Shown piece by piece: positions 3,308 through 28,761 of a stretch of DNA of 32,733 nucleotides. The notes under the pieces are model-generated. The model was not told the DNA's origin. It did no database searches and was given only the letters and a program-made list of their open reading frames with translations. The stretch covers positions 1-32,733 of the forward strand of contig MCFH01000129.1 in the NCBI GenBank assembly GCA_002104945.1, in the 5' to 3' direction. The stretch's first letter is position 1. The number at the start of each line of letters is the position of its first letter. This stretch comes from Piromyces finnis finn. Its lineage: Eukaryota; Fungi; Neocallimastigomycota. A program made the translations under genes and the position numbers.

Positions 3308-4962
3308 GTAGTAGTAGTAGTAGTATACATACGGTTTATTTTGAATTAAATCATATAATTCAATAATAGAAACACCTTCAAATGGTAAGCATCCGAAAGC
3401 AAAGCAATATAAAGTAATCTAAAAAATTTTAAATAAAATAAGATTATTATATATTATATATATTTAATCAAGAATTAAATAAGCTTACACCCATAGCCCA
3501 AATATCACATGCTTTAGCAGATAATTCACCATGTTGGATTTCACATAATTCTTTCATAATAAAATAAATTGAAATAAATAATTGGGAAAGAAATATTTTA
3601 ATTTCATAATTCTTGTTATATATAATATTAAAGATTAAATACCTGGAGCAAAAAAGGCTATAAATTTCAATATATAAAGTTAAAATATTTTCATTTTGTT
3701 CAAGAATGATAAATTAATATTCGTATTAATTAATTCATAGTAAAAATAACAAAATAGATTGATATTGGAATTTTTCTTTAATTAAATGATCTTAAATAAA
3801 ATAGATAAATAGATACTTTTAATTATATATATATTTTTCTTTTTTTTTTTTTACCTGGAGAACCAGAGGATTTTTTAGACATATCATCACCTGATGAAAA
3901 CATTTCAGATACACCAAAATCGACAATTTTTAAAGTACCATTAGCAGCTAACAATAAATTGTCAGGCTAATAAAATAAAATATTTATATTATTGTTAAAA
4001 TGTCTTATATAGGTAAATAAATGATAGAATAAAATTAATAAATTCTTAATTACCTTGATATCTTATATTATATAATATTATAGTGTTATTAAACAAAGAT
4101 TCATATATAAATTTGATTAATATATTATATATTATTGCTATTAAGTTATTATGCTCTTTTTTCATTTTGTGATTGCTGTTATATAATTTTCAAAAATATA
4201 CTCAATTTTTTTTTTTTTTTTTCCATTTATTTATTTACCTCTATGAGCAATATCGTTTTCATGTACTAATATTGAAAAGATTCATAGTAAATAAAATAAT
4301 TATATATTCATTTAATATTAAAAGAAAAATTATAGTTTTAGTAAAAACAAATAATTAATAATTATATTGGTTTATATATATATATATATATTCTTTTTTA
4401 TTTATAAATTTAAATGTATAAAAATTTATACTAACAATATTCAATTCCGAGGAACATTTCTCTAAAATAATATCTACACATTTCTTCATCAAATGATTCA
4501 GTCTTTCTATTTAATGAAATGTTCATAACAGTACCCTTTTCGCAACATTCATAAACCATATATAAACCGTCACCATTTGGATCATCTAATACTTCAAAAA
4601 GTTTAACAATATTTCTGTGATTAAGTTTCTTTAAAATAGCAATTTCTCCTCTAACAAAATCAATTGGATTTGATGGTCCTCTCATTAAATTTGGACGCAT
4701 TCCACCACGCATACCACCACGCATACCACCTCTACCAATCATTCTACCAAAACCATTAGCTTGAAGATGTTGCTTTCTTAAACGTGTTTTACTGAAAACT
4801 TTGACAGCAACTGGTCTACCATCATTGGTATCTCTTCCACGACTATGTATTATATATTTTATTATTTTCATTATAAATTTATTTATTTTAATAATTAATA
4901 ATTTTGAAAATAATTTTATACTAGTATAATTCTTAAATTGTATTTTTTTTATTATTTTATTG

Positions 4963-5011
<49 letters not shown>

Positions 5012-5428
5012 TACAAAACTGTTCCAAAGGATCCCTTTCCTAATTCTTCTTCTAATACCTTTTTTCATTTTCATTTATAATAATATAAAAGTAAAATTAA
5101 AATTGTAGAAAGAAATAAAAATATTAGCAAATAAATAAATGAAACATTTATAATAATAATAATTAAATAATAATGAAAAAATGCAATAATGTTAATAATA
5201 ATGATAATAATAAGAATAAAAAAATAAAGAATGAGTATATATATATATGCAATAATAATATTAATAATAATGATAATAATAAGAATAAAAAAATAAAGAA
5301 TGAAAATATATATATATATTTTAAGGGGATTATCATACATAATTATTAAGTTGGATTTCACCCTCATCATTTTGTTCATATTGTGCGTTGAGAGTTTCCT
5401 TAATTGTGTTTGGAGAGCTACTATGCAT
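2772..5428 (-). CDS. Ca2+/calmodulin-dependent protein kinase kinase (CaMKK/Ssp1/Sak1-like Ser/Thr kinase), 382 aa, 12 exons: complement(join(2772..2834,2922..3056,3149..3248,3333..3418,3489..3550,3643..3657,3855..3966,4054..4061,4239..4265,4436..4842,5015..5058,5339..5428))
   Basis: The spliced frame (1149 nt) gives KETLNAQY...NNYVLEEELGKGSFGTV, VAVKVFSK, EIAILKKLNHRNIVKLFEVLDDP, HRDIKPDNLL, DFGVSEMF, GSPAFFAPE, DIWAMGITLY and HPWLT. The insert after subdomain II and the VKETL-like N-terminal motif are CaMKK-family features. The start codon is the least certain element. Confidence 0.9.
4695..4736 (-). repeat. 12-bp coding tandem repeat giving GRGGMRGGMRGGMRP in the kinase insert
   Basis: The + strand shows repeated ccaccacgcat(a/t) units. 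The translation is visible in ORF 4431..5027. Confidence 0.85.
4966..5011. repeat. (AAT)n microsatellite in kinase intron 2, next to the donor site
   Basis: Uninterrupted taa run. It produces the poly-Tyr artefact in ORF 4431..5027. Confidence 0.9.
5181..5319. repeat. About 67-70 bp tandem duplication in kinase intron 1
   Basis: atgcaataat...ttaataataatgataataataagaataaaaaaataaagaatga...tatatatatat occurs twice, starting near 5181 and near 5247. Confidence 0.8.
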
Positions 5429-18518: not shown

Positions 18519-21500
18519 TTATGTTGAGATGTATTCTACATAAGATTCTGGTATTAAACCAATACGACCATTTGTTTCATTTTTAACCTAATGATAATAA
18601 TTAAAAAAAAAAATAAATTAAAATTTATTTACCTATATTGTTTTTTTTTATTAAAAATAAATTTCTAATTATTATATTTACCTTTATCCATCCTGGTTCA
18701 GAATTTTCAATAAAAGTAACAATATCATTATGAGTTACTGTTAATTCTTCATCCATTTGACCAGTATAATCATATATAACCTTTGCTTGCTTTATTACCT
18801 CCATAAATGGTGAACTATAATCATTATTTGATGTAGTATAGTTTCCTTCTTTTTTATCTGATGAATTAGAAGGAACTAAATAATTTGCTGGTACTAAACC
18901 TGTACCAGACGAACAAGAAACCTTTATCCATCCGTCTCCTTTATCTTTAGATAAAAATATTTATAGTGATATATACAAAATAATATTTATTAAATAAACG
19001 ACTTTTTTTTATATTTAAATTTTTTTTTTTTTATATACCTGGTTCTATTATAGTAACTTCTTCACCCGCATGTAGATCAACCTCATCATTTATTTGTTTT
19101 GTGTAGTCATAAGCCGCTATCATGGTTGGTAAATCAATTTGAAGATCACTTGAGCTAGAGAATGGGTTAGCACCTAGGTTTTTTTTTTTATAAAATAATT
19201 GTAAATATGATTTTTTTTAAAATAAAAAAAAATTTTTTTTTTTAAATATTATATATATATACTATCTAAAACATCATCATCATCATCGTCGGTATCATCT
19301 TCCAAGAATGGATTTTTAGTTTTTGATGTTGGTTGAACACCTTTTTTTATAAAATATAGGATAAAAATATAGTGATTTTTTTTTTTTTTTTGGTATTATA
19401 AGTTATTTAAATAGGCCATTTTTTTTTCGAATATTTTAAATAAATTATAGAATTAGATATACTTTTTGATGAATAAGTTGATAATTGAGACACTGTAACT
19501 GAAGTTGGTATAGTCGATATACTTTCTAATAATTTATAATATTGATAATGTATATATATGTATATATATATATATAAAGAAAAACTTTAATTTATTTATT
19601 ATATATAATATAATTATAATCATATATTATTAGTATTATTGAACTTTTTTCGGAAGAAGGGTATGAAGAAATTGTTGCTCTTTTGTTTTTTGGCAACTTT
19701 TGTTTAGTACAGTTTGGTGGAACATTTAATTCACATTTAAGGTGACATGAATAACCACATTCACGACAGGATAAACCTTTTCTCCATAAAGATTCACCAC
19801 AACATGAACATACAGTTTGTTTTATAAAGTTTTTATTTTTGAAATTATGTGGAATGATTTCCATTTCAGTACCACCTATAGCTTCTGAAATTGCATTGAT
19901 TTGAACTTCACATTTTAATTCCTCTAATTGTAAAAGTGCTATTTCTTTTTTAGCATCAACAACCTTTTGATAAATTTCATTTGGATCACCAAATGAAGGA
20001 GTTGCTTTATATGTTTGATAGACACTATTTATTCCTTCTAATTCTTTATTCTTTGAATTAATATCATCTTTAATGATACTCAGATTTTGTTGTAATTTTA
20101 ATGATGTATTCCTAAGGAATGTTATCGCATTTATATCCTTTGTATATATATCCCCTGTTGTTTTCCATAATGGAATGGTGGCAAAGGTTTTAACTTCCGG
20201 TGATTTCCATTCCTTTTTATTATATTGGATAAATAAAGCAATATCGTTTGATAAATCTATTTTATTACTATAGTCTACAGTTTTGTTATTAGTGGATTTT
20301 AATTTTTCCATTAATTCATTTTCACTATCTAAATAATCTTTACAAATTGATTTGTAATATTCTACAAGTGATTCGTGCAATTCTTGCATATTCTTTATAT
20401 ATATATATTAAGTTATATATTAGTTTTTTTTTTGCATGCTTTGTAATATCATTTGAATTTTATAATAGTTTTCTTTTCAAAAATTTATTTCTTATTTCAT
20501 ATTTACTACTACATACGTCAAGAACATTTTTATTTTCCACATTAACTAATTTATCATTATAGGCGTTAGCAACTTTAATTGATAATATATACATATTCTG
20601 AAAATAATTAAAATTATAGTTAAAAAAAATTATTTAATTTTAATATTTTAAATTTATTGAGGTTTCCTTTTTAAATATATCCATAACCATATTACCATTT
20701 TATTATTCATATCAATTATATTTTGATCATAGATTTTTTTAGACTGTTAGATATTTATTTAAAGAAATTTTAATATTTTATCCAATAAAATATAGTAATT
20801 TTGTGAATAGTTATTATTATTTTATTTTATTTTTATTTACTTTTTCATCTTCATTTTTTTCAATTTTTTTTTTCATTGCATCTGTATTGTTACACGCTTC
20901 ACGAAATTTGGTTTCATTCTTCGGTTATATATATATATATATATATTATATTAATATAATATTTTCATTTTTTTTTAATTTATTTAATTCAATTTATAAT
21001 ACGTAAATCTAATAAATTTATAATATTACTTTATCGGCTTCCGTACACATGTTTGTAATTTCAGTATTAATTCTTGATGAATAATCCAAATGCTTGTATA
21101 AATATAATATAATATATAAATATATATATTATAAATTTATTTTTATTATTATTATATATATTATGTTAGAGGTACCTTTTTTCTTATTTCTTCTTTTTTT
21201 ACTACGGATAATTTTATATTTTCTGATAAAGAATTTAATTTTTCAACATAATCATTTCTATCTTTTATACTTTCTTCGAATTTTTTTAAAAATTTATCAT
21301 AAGATTTTTGAAAGGTTGAACTATATTAATGTTTAAAAAAAAAAAAAAAAAAAAAAAAGAAAATTAAAAAGTTTTTCTTAAAAAGGAATTTTATTTTGAA
21401 TGGCATTTTTTTTTGTTTAATCCCATTCTTTTTATAATTGTTTTTATTTTAAGGTTTACTCTATATTAAAAAATATTTACTTTTTTGGAATGACTGTATC

Positions 21501-22683: not shown

Positions 22684-25600
22684 ATGGATACTGATATCAG
22701 TAATGAATCAGAATCTTATGATGAAAACCTTGAGGAAGAATTAAAAATAGAAGAAGAAAATGGAAGTGTAAATTATGATGATCAAATAAACTTAATATCG
22801 CTAGTATCAGATGAATCTCTTAAAGAAGAAAAAATAAAATCAGGAAAAAATAGTATTGATAATATAGATTTAAAAGATGATCAATTAAATAATAATATTC
22901 GAAATGAATCAACACCATCAAAAGAAATTTCATTGGAAAATAAAGAGGAAGATTATAAATGGAGTGAACATTCATTACAAGGTTCCAATCTTTCAAATAG
23001 TTTACATGAACGAGAAGTTGATATAGATGAAGGTGATATTGTATTAAAGTCAATAAATGGTATTAAAAAAGATGAAAATGGTTTTATCATGAATTCAAGT
23101 GAATCAAAAAAATCAAAAAAATCACTTTACGGTAGTGGATATTTTGGTAGTAATAGTCAAATTGCAAGAAGTAATAAAGAATTATATAAAAATATTGTTC
23201 AGAAAAGATATCCACTAGGAAATAAAAATTATGAAGTAAAACCTCGTACTCCTATTACTGAAGAAACAATACCATCAGAAGTTAAAGCACAAGAAATATA
23301 TGAAGAACAACAAAGTTCATTTTCAAAAGGTACTATTCATTATCATTTACAAGACCCTGTAGAATCACAAAATTTTCCAAATAAAAGAGAGAAAGTTAGG
23401 TATATTGAATGTAATATGTTTAATTCTAAATCTTCTGTAATACTGGATAAACTTACGGATGATACAATTAAGAAAAAAAGTGATCGATGGTTATGTTCAT
23501 CTTATTTAAATAATGAAAAATATAAAAAAAACTTTGATGTTGATATAAATAATCTTTCAGTTCAAGTTCTAGCACAGGAATTTTTAACAAATGAAAAAGT
23601 TGACTTGGAAACTAGAGCATACCTTTTAGAATCCGTTTTTCCAATTCTCTGTGTTAGTTTAGAAAAATTATTAATGGAAATTGATAGAAGAAAAATTATT
23701 GAAAATGATGAAAAACCTTCTGAATTTGTTGTAGAACGTGATCATAATGCAATACCAAGAGATGTTCCATTTGATTCTATAAATTGGTTAGGTAAAATGT
23801 TTATTTTTAAAAAATAATATATAATAACTTTTAATATAATTAAAAGAAAATCTAAAAAAAAAGTGGAATTATTATTGAATATTTTTTTAAAAAATTTTTT
23901 ATGTATTAATGTTTAATAATTTTTAAAAAAAATATTATTTTGATACTCAATATTTTATGCCAATAATATATATAAATTTTAAAATTTCAGCTCAATATCT
24001 CTATCGTAATAATCCTAAATATTCAAATTTTACCGATGCTACATCAACACCATATCTTAAATCTATTAAATCAGTGTTGACAACATTGAAAGCAAAATTA
24101 TTTGAAATGGATGTTAATAAAAAGGCATTTGAACGTGCAGATGAACTAGCCAAAAAAAGAGAAGAAGAACGACAACAAAAAATTATGGAAGCACTATATA
24201 TTGAAAAGAAAAAAACTTATAGTAATTTATTATCATCTCTTTATAAGCAATGGGTGAGAAAAAAGTGGAGAAAAGAAAGTGACTTATATTTAACACAATT
24301 CGAAATTGTAAATATTTATTAACATAATATTGTTTTTGTAATGTTATATATTCTAATAGTATAAAATTGTATATATATTTCGTTAGAAAAAAAAATAATA
24401 AAGATATTTATTTCTTTTTTTAATTTTTTAATAAATAACAATAGATTGATTGTTTTAAAACTATTTATTCAACTTATGAGCCTTCAAAGGATTCAGATGA
24501 TTTTAAAGAAAAAATGGATAAATTAATTCAGAGTATTATTGTTGAATTTGACACTATAATCAACAAAAGTAAAGATAATAAGGAAAATAATGATGACCTT
24601 AAAATCGAAGAAATAGATGAACCAGTAGAAAATAATAAAGATAATATAAATGAACAAGATAATAATAATACTAACAATGCTGAGAATAAGACTGTGGCAA
24701 ATACTGAAACGAATAGTAATGAAAATATTAATGGAAATAATAACAATATCAATATTTCAAATGATGGTGAAATAAATGATGAAAATAAAAATTTAATTAA
24801 AGAGAATGATGAAAATCATATCATTCAAAATGAAACTGAAAATATAAAAGAAGATAATAAAGATAAAAATAATGTTTCTGAAAATAAAGATCAAATAAGC
24901 TTAGAAAATAATTCATCTTTAAAAGAAACCCAAAATAAATCTGATAACAATAATGAAAATTGTAAAGAGCTTCATATTTCACAAGAAGATTTTATAGATA
25001 TCATTCTAAATAATATAATGGAGTGGAAAATTGAAGATGTTTCTCAATTACTTTCTTTAATCATTGAAAATGCAAAATTAGAAGAAACTGAAATGAATAG
25101 AATATATGAAATTATTTGTAAACTTCCAGGACTTTTACTTCTTGGAAATGATTGGAAAAAATTTATTGAAAGTAATTATGAAAAATTAGAATTACCATTA
25201 TATTTTGTAGATAATAAAGATAATGAAAAAAGGACAAATTCTTCAGATGGAGAAGAGGAAGAGACTAAAAATGATAATATAATAGAAGATCAAATCAATA
25301 TTAATGATGATAGCTTTGGTATAAATGAAATTAAATCGTTAGAACTTCGAAGAAATATAAAAATAATTGATGATATTTGTACAATAATTATATCTGAACA
25401 TAATGATAAAAAGGAAAATAATGACGATAATACTGATGATAATGTGGAGGCTGAAAAAACAGCAACAACCAATAACAATATATATGATGATATTAATGAT
25501 GAAAAAGAAAAAGAAATATTTAATATTACCCCACTATTTAATAAATCTGTAGAGAGACTCATTGATTATTTGAAATATAATAAAATTAATATAAAAGAGT

Positions 25601-28600
25601 TTAATGATATTAATGTTGAAGAAAACTTCAACGGAAATAATTTCCAATATTTTATAAAATATATTATAAGTACTTATTCTTCCAGAACAGCTTTATTTAT
25701 TTTTTATCAGTTAAATTATTTGAAATTAATAGAAATTGAGGAAGCTAAAATCCAAGAAATAAAAAGAAAAGAAAAAGAAATATTACAAAAAAGAATCATG
25801 AAAATAAAATTGATTTTCAAAAATGTGGATAGCGAAAACAAAGGTTCAGTTTTAGTAAAACAACTAAATACAATTTTTGAAAATGTTCCAACATCTATTG
25901 ACGATATGGAATTTTTAAAATATCCAATGGAAGTACAGGATATGTTCGTATATCTTAAAATTCCTGTAATGGCTAGAGCCCTTTTAACTAAAACTATTAC
26001 AGAACAAGAATTTGTTGACCATGTATTAAATGTATGTGCTTCTCTTGCACCAGAACATTTCGATATTGTTTTACAATTGATTTTAAATTCTTTAGGAATT
26101 AATTTAGATGCTGAAGAGAATCAAGAAGAAAAAGTTAATAATGAAATTGATGAAGAAAATGAATTGTCAGAAAGAGAAAAGGATCAGAATGAAGTTCTTA
26201 AAATGATATGGTCCCTATTGAAAGATCCTGGTTCCGATATTTCTCAGATATGCGATTTAGGTTTAACATGGACTATGGATATAATTTCTAAATATAATAA
26301 AACAGGTCAATTCATTGGTGATCTTGTTGTTAGTAATTCAGTAGTAGATAATACTGGAGGTGGGGATGAAGAAAAGAAAGATAATGACAAAACTAATTTA
26401 ATATATATATCTGTTGATAATACGGGTAAAGAGTCAATAGAAAATATCGATAAACAATTTAGTTCATTAGATAATCCAAAATCTTCAATTTTAGAAGCAT
26501 TTAAAAATAATATTGTTAAAGTTACAAATTGTAATGAATCACTTTCAGAAGATGAAAAATCTATGAAAGATTCATTAATTCTTAATGTACCATTTACAGG
26601 AAAAGATGATCAAGTTGCATTGGGTGTTATGTCTATTTTGTTAAAACCACAAAGTAAAGAATCACTTGAAAATAAAGAAGAAGCCGGAAATAATGAGAAT
26701 AATTCTGAGGAAAAACAAGATACTTCCGATGAAAATACAAATAGTAATATTTCCCCTGAGTTCTCAAAAGAAGATATTAGTTTTATTAAGGTATGTAAAA
26801 TTATAAATCAATATATATATACATAATAATTAATAATGAATACTAAGATTTTTTTAATTTTAATTTTAAATAATACAATAGGCCGTGGGAAAAGTTTTAG
26901 GTTATGCAATTGAACATATTGTTCATCGAGAAAGGTCAAATGCTATCCTTGAATCATGTTCAACTTATATATTGGACTTACTAAAGAATAGTAATGTTAA
27001 TTTATATTTAGTTGAAAAAGTACCATCTAAAAATGCTATTGAAAAAATAGGTAAAAAGAAGAAGAACAAAGAAAAAACCAATAGTATGGATGATGATGAA
27101 GAAGAAGACCAACCATTCTCAAACGAAGATTATACTTATGTTATGTATGTATCCGATAAACCAACAGAAGAAGAAAAGAAAAAGATATCAAAAAAGAATG
27201 GAAAGAAGAAAACTAATGATAAAAATAATAAAAATAAAGTAAAATTCCAAAAATCTGAAAAAGATAATGTTTTGAAGAAAGTAACTAAAAAGGATAAAAA
27301 TAGGTTTGTAATATATATTGAAATATAATTTATCAGTATTATAGTAAATAAATAAAGGTTAAATCAGTGAAATGTATTATACTAAAAATTTTTTTAATAT
27401 TAATAGAAATGCATTAATGGAATCCGTTACTACTACTAAAGTTGTAACTAGACCTGAAGATGAAGGTAATGAGGAAAAAATAACAGTAATACCAATTTTA
27501 GATCAAATGAACCAATGTATCGGTATGATTTCAATGAATACAAAATTGGCAGAAAATGATCCAACGTTCATTGAGGATTTAAATGAATTGAAGCATTTAG
27601 CTGAATTAATTTCTGATGCCATGATATTAGCAGATCAAGAAGCTAAGAAGAATAATAAACCATTATTATGTAGGAGAAAATTTATAAAAATATATATATT
27701 AATTATTAATTAAAAAGATATAACTATATTTATGTATTGTTACATTAACTAAAATTTTTTCCCCTAATGCTGTATTATTAATAAATTTAATATAGATGCA
27801 GAAACTATAAGTGAACAATTAAGAAGAAAACTTTTCTTCCCAAAATTATTATTATTAAAAGCAAGAGAAAACTTATCTAAAATTGATGCCAATTCTATAG
27901 CTGAATTAAAGAGTTATCGTGTACCACCAACTATTATTCATAAAGTTGTATGTTGTATTTTATATATTTTTGGTCACACTCCTAAACAAGGTATGAAAGA
28001 AAAAATATTGATAATTTACGCTAAATAGAATTAAACTGATTATATAAATTTTATATAACTATTTTATTATAATAAACTAGTTGAATCATGGCAAGATGCT
28101 GCAAAGGTATATTTTTTCATTTTATTTATTTTTTTTTAAAAATTAAAAATTTTATTTTATAACTATTAAATTAATATATAATATTAATTTAATATTAGTA
28201 TATAAATCAAGACTTGTTACGTAAGATGCAACAATATGATTCAACAGCAAAACAAAAAAGCTCCGTATTCAAAAGAATTAAATCTATTATTAAAAGTATT
28301 AAAAAAAATTTTTTTTTTATATAAAATTAAAATAATAATAGTATAGCATTTTTATTAACTATAATATTTAATGATGAAAAAAAAAATATTTCATAGAATT
28401 TATAAAAGGAAATGATATTAAGAAACAATCCTCACTTCCAGCTCAATGTATGTATGATTGGTTATTGGTCTGTTTAACACTTCGAAGTATTGCAATAAGA
28501 AGTAGAAAAGCTCATAAAGAGGAAAATGTATTTGCTAATAACGATTATGAAGAAGAGGAGGAAGAAGTATTTGATGATGAAGAAGAAGAAGAAAAAACTC

Positions 28601-28761
28601 TTAATTATATTCTTAATCATCAAAACGGTAATTCACCGAACTTTAAATCCTTATTTAATTTAACTTCCAAGAAAAATGAAGATAATGAACCAGAAAAAGA
28701 AAAAACAATTCATTATTCATTTTCATATTCTAGAATTGATAAATATAGGAATGGAAATTAA
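22684..28761 (+). CDS. EFCAB5: EFCAB5-like multidomain protein, 1712 aa, 9 exons: join(22684..23791,23991..24307,24445..26790,26882..27303,27407..27669,27796..27990,28081..28106,28199..28295,28397..28761)
   Basis: All introns are GT-AG with consistent phase (5139 nt). LETRAYLLESVFPILCVSLEKLL...FDSINWLAQYLYRNNPKY matches my recollection of the conserved EFCAB5 N-terminal block. There is a degenerate EF-hand (FKNVDSENKGSV) and GAF-like segments (LNVPFTG...LGVMSIL; VIPILDQMNQCIGMISM). The gene model is firmer than the symbol. Confidence 0.75.

Follow-up and report, generated by a model that had tools for sequence, protein, structure and literature searches.

The window examined here is the whole contig MCFH01000129.1 of the fungus Piromyces finnis (Neocallimastigomycota), 32,733 nucleotides in length. 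Its G+C content is 20% and its top protein matches are chytrid fungi, in keeping with an anaerobic gut fungus. On the + strand, a multi-exon gene spans approximately positions 22684 to 28761, and its sequence identifies it as an orthologue of EFCAB5. Dynein microtubule-binding domains (MTBDs) are usually regarded as peculiar to dynein heavy chains. Four exons at the 3′ end of this gene encode a module which, on sequence and modelling evidence, is a well-supported, true but diverged homologue of the MTBD found at the dynein stalk tip. The role that we favour for this module lies within the radial spoke.

Gene model and splice junctions

The coordinates of the exons and introns are collected in Table 1. 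All four module exons are free of stop codons in the frames listed there, and the three codons split by introns specify Y, V and K. The four introns of this region are all of the GT..AG type. They are 90–126 nucleotides long, with an A+T content of 86–96% versus 54–75% in the exons. Once joined, the exons encode a module of 151 residues.

Scanning of metagenome contigs with exon a yielded two relatives. The first, L001, is a contig of 1423 nucleotides from a related organism, with approximately 80% DNA identity to the window. It carries the same exons with zero introns, in a single open reading frame (ORF) of 351 codons. The window exons map to residues 35–123, 125–188, 190–197, 198–229 and 231–351 of this ORF, and the single L001 residues left between the mapped blocks are the split codons. 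Identity amounts to 61/64 residues for exon a, 7/8 for exon b, 28/32 for exon c and 37/45 for the first part of exon d; over the whole module, 134 of the 151 residues are identical (89%). By its sequence, L001 behaves like the spliced transcript of an orthologue, and it confirms every junction since this intron-free contig joins the exons exactly as modelled. The second relative, L002, is a genomic contig. Both of the upstream introns are retained there in unchanged positions, and identity to the window is 51–52% in introns versus 76–89% in exons.

The earlier note on this DNA had predicted four small terminal exons. The reading frames, the GT..AG introns and the L001 junctions all agree with this prediction, and the peptide given there is recovered exactly. 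The location proposed for the module (27796–28500) is also right, except for its end: the module runs slightly further, to approximately 28533.

Beyond the fold, exon d continues into an acidic tail (28534–28758) in which 20 of the 75 residues are D or E and nine are K or R. This tail adjoins a head of net charge +10, and it is also present in L001 and in many chytrid orthologues. The acidic tail might fold back onto the basic head. A further observation concerns the 5′ part of L001 (L001:200–260), where a one-base shift relative to the conserved upstream frame lies in an A-rich run near 236–250. Most likely, this shift is a homopolymer assembly error which, being located upstream of the module, has no effect on it.

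Table 1 Exons and introns of the EFCAB5-like gene, followed by neighbouring genes (positions are those of the window)
Feature	Position	Strand	Evidence or remark
N-terminal exons, Dpy-30-like docking region of EFCAB5	22684..24322	+	Similarity to bovine EFCAB5 (9fqr_Xl); colinear with EFCAB5
Exon directly 5′ of the module, end of second GAF-like domain	27407..27669	+	Weak GAF_2; L001 ORF residues 35–123; acceptor AG 27405–27406
Intron GT..AG, 126 nucleotides, 86% A+T	27670..27795	+	Not in L001; in L002 at 52% identity
Module exon a: CC1 helix stub, helix H1 with E-L-K-S-Y-x-x-P-P motif, next helix	27796..27990	+	Translation (27798–27989, 64 residues), Pfam MT, PDB matches
Intron GT..AG, 90 nucleotides, 86% A+T	27991..28080	+	Not in L001
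Module exon b: micro-exon of 26 nucleotides, conserved Trp of H3 region	28081..28106	+	Translation ESWQDAAK (28083–28106)
Intron GT..AG, 92 nucleotides, 96% A+T	28107..28198	+	
Module exon c: invariant Y-D-x-T motif and the helices after it	28199..28295	+	Translation (28199–28294, 32 residues); D87 and T89 invariant in family
Intron GT..AG, 101 nucleotides, 91% A+T	28296..28396	+	
Exon d, first part: last MTBD helix (S-x-P-A...W motif) and CC2 helix stub	28397..28533	+	Translation (reads from 28399 to the stop); model helix 119–150 = 28435–28530
Exon d, remainder: acidic low-complexity C-terminal tail, stop 28759–28761	28534..28761	+	Outside the fold
Protein-kinase exon ORF	4431..5024	-	Pfam E 3e-12
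ORF of 1192 residues	13703..17278	+	No Pfam match at E ≤ 0.001
TOCA-type HR1 and C1 domain ORF	19592..20386	-	Pfam E 3e-11, 6e-11

Relation to the dynein microtubule-binding domain

The window exons were searched singly, and the contiguous module of L001 (L001:608–1060, 151 residues) served as a proxy for the joined module. An exhaustive protein search with exon a returned 105 proteins at an expect value (E) ≤ 1e-3. From the exon a protein matches, 35 modules were aligned to give the family profile A1.

The Pfam MT family (PF12777) has a curated gathering score of 24 bits, which is reached neither by exon a (13.4 bits, E 0.041, profile positions 91–129) nor by the contiguous L001 module (14.9 bits, E 0.014). 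This sub-threshold score is the reason why the domain is left unannotated in databases. Within the family, 13 of the 35 modules match Pfam MT at E ≤ 0.01, the lowest E being 1.3e-4, and MT is the only Pfam family to which the modules show a match.

Sequences of solved structures point to the same domain. Taken alone, exon a yields no more than hints: its Pfam MT match falls on the appropriate part of the profile, a search against the PDB gives 12 matches, every one of them at the stalk tip of a dynein heavy chain, and 29 of its 30 language-model neighbours (Atlas features) belong to PF12777 clusters. With the contiguous L001 module the similarity becomes significant. Using phmmer, this module retrieves the MTBD of yeast cytoplasmic dynein (6KJO/6KJN/6KIO, MTBD residues 14–127 of 141), and the first 17 PDB matches are all dynein heavy chains. 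Profile A1 matches 88 PDB sequences at E ≤ 1; among the 60 of these that were listed, 58 are dyneins aligned at the stalk tip, the exceptions being EFCAB5 and the radial-spoke protein RSP2. The alignment between A1 and dynein extends over the globular head, where the landmarks PP, W, YD-T and S-PA-W line up.

For the fold, AlphaFold2 was run on A1. The resulting model is that of the L001 module (89% identical) and not of the window protein itself. It has a predicted local distance difference test score (pLDDT) of 93.0 and a predicted template modelling score (pTM) of 0.86, and comprises two long helices, one N-terminal and one C-terminal, with six short helices between them. The model thus describes a six-helix head between two short antiparallel helices, the counterparts of the initial turns of CC1 and CC2 in the dynein stalk. 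Foldseek superposes it on the dynein MTBDs 3ERR and 8PTK with template modelling (TM) scores of 0.77–0.80 and a root-mean-square deviation (rmsd) of 2.3–2.5 Å. VIA-align gives Z 15.8 to 3ERR and to 5AYH, over 144 residues and with an rmsd of 2.5–2.9 Å (2.5 Å to mouse dynein MTBD), 15.7 to 6KJO and 14.9 to 6RZB; the top unrelated chain reaches approximately 5.5.

The dynein-MTBD-like segment which the earlier note had recognized is thereby supported by phmmer (E 1.3e-6), by the A1 profile (E 5.5e-11) and by structural comparison (Z 15.8 versus approximately 5.5 for unrelated chains). Among the comparisons proposed there, the Pfam MT profile stays under its 24-bit threshold while the sequence match to solved MTBDs is significant, and structure prediction combined with Foldseek does return dynein MTBDs.

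No AAA or dynein domain is detected by Pfam in the ORFs of the gene or in full-length orthologues of 1200–1500 residues, which bears out the view that the module lies at the C-terminal end of an EFCAB5-like protein which is not a motor and has no AAA ring. On the same Pfam result, a dynein gene or a dynein fragment was rejected as the identity of this part of the window. The module and the dynein MTBD are homologous in sequence and share a helical head enclosed by antiparallel CC1 and CC2 helices. They differ in that the window protein has no AAA+ ring and no long stalk, with only about three heptads per side, and in that the solved homologues of the module belong to radial-spoke proteins.

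EFCAB5 identity and domain order

Many of the full-length proteins matched by exon a are 1000–1500 residues long and carry the module 150–250 residues before the C-terminus. Proteins named EFCAB5 by NCBI are found among them in Cladochytrium, Irineochytrium, Physocladia and Polyrhizophydium, together with an EFCAB5-like protein in the hemichordate Glandiceps. A partial EFCAB5 occurs in the heterolobosean Acrasis kona, and unnamed module-bearing proteins are present in Rozella and Amoeboradix. The Pfam content of the orthologues comprises Dpy-30, EF-hand and GAF domains.

BLASTP shows the window exons to be colinear with chytrid and hemichordate EFCAB5: the ORFs at 22684 and 23957 align with the N-terminal parts, and exons a, c and d align with the module. 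Residues 276–348 of ORF 22684–23814 match residues 134–207 of bovine EFCAB5, in the Dpy-30 region, with E 1.1e-5. The bovine protein is represented by chain 9fqr_Xl (1509 residues), which is identified as EFCAB5 because the hemichordate EFCAB5-like protein matches it end to end with E 5e-234; bovine EFCAB5 is UniProt E1B7P6 (PMC11779644). The full-length family profile A2 retrieves the same chain with E 5e-132. The molecule names of entry 9FQR seem to be shifted, with the 1509-residue chain labelled AKAP14 and a dynein-like chain of 4583 residues labelled RSPH9.

The window protein thus belongs to the EFCAB5 family and shows the same order of elements: an N-terminal Dpy-30-like motif, a putative GAF region and the C-terminal module. 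A central ORF of 770 residues is Asn-rich, of low complexity and divergent, and gives nothing meaningful against the PDB. A word-index protein search with this ORF, dominated by Asn-rich words and confined by its length filter to proteins shorter than the full-length relatives, returned a single fragment of 440 residues. In ORF 27372–27710 the match to Pfam GAF_2 is weak (E 0.13), and the GAF/GAF_2 matches of the orthologues range from E 3.5e-8 to 1.8e-3. No EF-hand is matched by Pfam in any window ORF, and in the hemichordate orthologue the EF-hand matches are weak (E 7e-4).

A mouse study reported that most chordates conserve EFCAB5 and that Chlamydomonas and Tetrahymena lack it (PMC12423330). 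The fungal, hemichordate and heterolobosean matches indicate that the family is much older than chordates.

Solved homologues in radial spokes

EFCAB5 is a component of radial spoke 3 (RS3) in bovine and mouse sperm (PMC11779644, PMC12423330), and Efcab5 knockout impairs sperm motility (PMC12423330). The protein sits in the RS3 stalk, where its Dpy-30 motif pairs with AK7 on CFAP91. Furthermore, it contacts RGS22 of the head of radial spoke 2 (RS2), LRRD1 and STKLD1, thus forming an RS2–RS3 bridge (PMC11779644).

Profile A1 matches residues 1322–1476 of bovine EFCAB5 with E 1.2e-14. Whether animal EFCAB5 keeps or loses the module had been raised as a question by the earlier note. It is kept: intact in the hemichordate, degenerate in the H1 region in cattle, where insertions break up the motif of helix H1 and the conserved Glu has disappeared. 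Fungal modules differ from the bovine one in that they retain the E-L-K/R-S-Y-x-x-P-P motif of H1 and are strongly basic, whereas animal modules are near neutral.

When the C-terminal 449 residues of the hemichordate protein were modelled with AlphaFold2, the result (pLDDT 86.6) contained two GAF folds followed by the module. The tandem GAF folds resemble the GAF domains of PDE5, PDE6 and PDE2. Since this model of tandem GAF and module superposes on 9fqr_Xl (TMq 0.84, E 1e-32, 452 columns), the module has been resolved experimentally in the bovine sperm axoneme.

The second solved homologue is Chlamydomonas RSP2 (7jtk_C, 7jrj_I), of which residues 449–599 in 7jtk_C are the top Foldseek match to the module model. 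VIA-align gives Z 14.7 over 149 residues for this segment and profile A1 matches it with E 1.7e-8; the hemichordate model of GAF and module aligns with 7jtk_C over 400 columns (E 6.3e-5). Like EFCAB5, RSP2 combines Dpy-30 and GAF with a module of the same fold. In contrast, it belongs to the RS1/RS2 neck rather than to RS3, has no EF-hand region and is annotated as calmodulin-binding. From the neck, the long C-terminal part of RSP2 extends to the surface of the spoke head. RSP2 is not retrieved by profile A2 at E ≤ 0.01 and was provisionally rejected as a full-length relative, the sequence similarity being confined to the module. The published descriptions of EFCAB5 and of RSP2 do not place the module on the doublet lattice.

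Tubulin-contact residues and charge

Salt bridges between yeast dynein and tubulin involve six dynein residues (E3122, K3117, R3124, R3152, R3159 and R3201), and single mutation of each of the basic ones cuts the microtubule affinity more than two-fold (PMC7042235). These positions were mapped onto the 35 modules of A1 through HMMER alignments. Two are kept in the window protein, namely the equivalents of E3122 (Glu, as in 35/35 modules) and of R3124 (Lys, with a basic residue in 33/35). The other four are lost: the equivalent of R3201 is Gln (basic in 26/35), that of K3117 is Ala (basic in 0/35), that of R3152 is Gln and that of R3159 is Asn (each basic in 2/35). Window and L001 thus keep two of the six salt-bridge residues, and the family consensus keeps three.

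A probable role inside the spoke and its alternatives

A spoke-internal role is favoured because both solved homologues are located in spokes and most of the salt-bridge residues are lost. On balance, we consider it probable that the conserved C-terminal domain which the four exons form in this fungal EFCAB5 orthologue acts inside the radial spoke, presumably without being clamped on tubulin as dynein is. In the zoospore flagellum, the module would serve as a protein–protein docking or structural head within the spoke. Placed directly after the tandem GAF region, it could anchor the EF-hand/GAF scaffold within the RS3 stalk or connect this scaffold with a neighbouring spoke. It would probably not clamp the tubulin lattice in the dynein manner.

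Several points weigh against this assignment. It relies on published descriptions of EFCAB5 and RSP2 as whole proteins. In addition, RGS22, the mammalian bridge partner, is reported to be metazoa-specific (PMC13443885), so the fungal partner must be something other than RGS22. Over approximately 121 residues, the net charge of fungal modules is +10 to +19 versus −2 to +2 in animals. A basic fungal module would suit an acidic partner such as tubulin, which suggests that the function in fungi may differ. Lastly, Dictyostelium dynein does not retain the arginines of H3 either (PMC7042235); their loss is therefore not decisive.

Microtubule binding by the module is possible, and the alternative which takes it furthest is a motor-less microtubule-binding head that would dock the EF-hand/GAF scaffold on axonemal doublet or central-pair microtubules via the H1/H3/H6 face of dynein. 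True homology and a fold shared with tubulin-binding MTBDs speak for it, as do the nearly invariant H1 Glu/Arg pair, the H6 Arg/Lys kept in 26/35 modules, the strong positive net charge of fungal modules and an MTBD-like fold in the structure of Toxoplasma gondii intraconoidal microtubule 1 (9ya2_L, Z 11.5). These arguments are confronted with the absence of three of the six salt-bridge residues across the family and of four in the window protein, when in yeast dynein every single mutation of a basic one lowers the affinity more than two-fold. Moreover, bovine EFCAB5 has lost the H1 motif altogether, and both solved homologues occupy spoke regions described as off the doublet surface. We consider such docking unlikely. 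The earlier note had proposed a stand-alone microtubule-docking module possibly tethering a signalling scaffold to the doublets, a claim which, as worded there, finds no support in the position of the homologues in spokes (9fqr_Xl, RSP2) or in the conservation of two of six salt-bridge residues. By comparison, a chance resemblance or a wrong gene model, with small exons that are unreal or a dynein match that stems from generic helical or coiled-coil composition, is extremely improbable and effectively refuted already. The Pfam MT scores of 13.4–14.9 bits against a cut-off of 24 would be in its favour, but L001 joins the exons exactly as modelled, exon a is conserved in 105 database proteins, the profile match to dynein (E 5.5e-11) keeps the landmarks of the head in register, and dynein MTBDs score Z 15.8 where unrelated helical proteins score 5.5.

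A different kind of explanation is a signal-driven switch, in which GAF ligand or EF-hand Ca2+ sensing would shift the register of the stalk-stub helices and thereby change the affinity of the head for its partner. This is compatible with either a spoke partner or tubulin. A tandem GAF region of the PDE2/5/6 type precedes the module, CC1-like and CC2-like helices flank its head, and in dynein it is the registry sliding of the CC1 and CC2 helices which sets the affinity (PMC7042235). The switch is, however, reached by inference only, the stub helices measure just ~22 and ~32 residues, and within the window the Pfam GAF match is weak and the EF-hand absent; we regard it as quite improbable. With the same reserve, the GAF and MTBD-like unit common to EFCAB5 and RSP2 can be pictured as an ancient spoke signalling device, in which sensing by the GAF and EF-hand domains would move the two stalk-stub helices and thereby switch the dynein-like head on and off an acidic partner; such an idea has little probability in our eyes. 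In fungi, this acidic partner might be the tubulin tails. If true, the dynein stalk tip would have a motor-less equivalent in this device, which would also hint at the origin or destination of the dynein MTBD.

Significance and wider occurrence of motor-less modules

In the radial-spoke protein EFCAB5, a clear MTBD homologue is a constant feature of the C-terminal region. The module ranges over gut fungi, chytrids, Rozella, Amoeboradix, a heterolobosean and a hemichordate, and is degenerate in cattle. Through this shared domain, two systems of the axoneme are connected, namely the motors and the machinery that regulates them. The family and the structure are already known, and the window holds an additional fungal representative. 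A literature search, from which the 2021 spoke-structure papers PMC7855293 and PMC7855469 were left out, found no statement linking EFCAB5 or RSP2 to a dynein-like MTBD, and the MTBD homology of their C-terminal domain apparently has gone unremarked before. Annotation is gained where Pfam misses the domain, and EFCAB5 is extended well past the chordate range of PMC12423330; the understanding of its function is not yet changed.

Motor-less MTBD modules seem to be a wider phenomenon, judging from database matches in which other non-dynein proteins bear several such modules in tandem. In the sponge Oopsacas minuta, a protein of 682 residues combines a Hemingway/CFAP97 domain with two Pfam MT stretches (E 6.7e-13). 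An unnamed protein of 465 residues and another protein of 746 residues contain three (E 2.8e-50) and five (E 4.1e-34) MT modules, respectively, and exon a is matched in two stretches of a Pharyngomonas protein of 457 residues. Among solved structures, residues 1207–1457 of 9ya2_L align with the model of the module (Z 11.5, 121 residues) and may represent a dynein-tip-like fold on a microtubule. Finally, the 3337-residue protein ehbp1l1a of the fish Menidia gives eight short matches to exon a (query 24–54), which might reflect either a repeated motif or mere composition.

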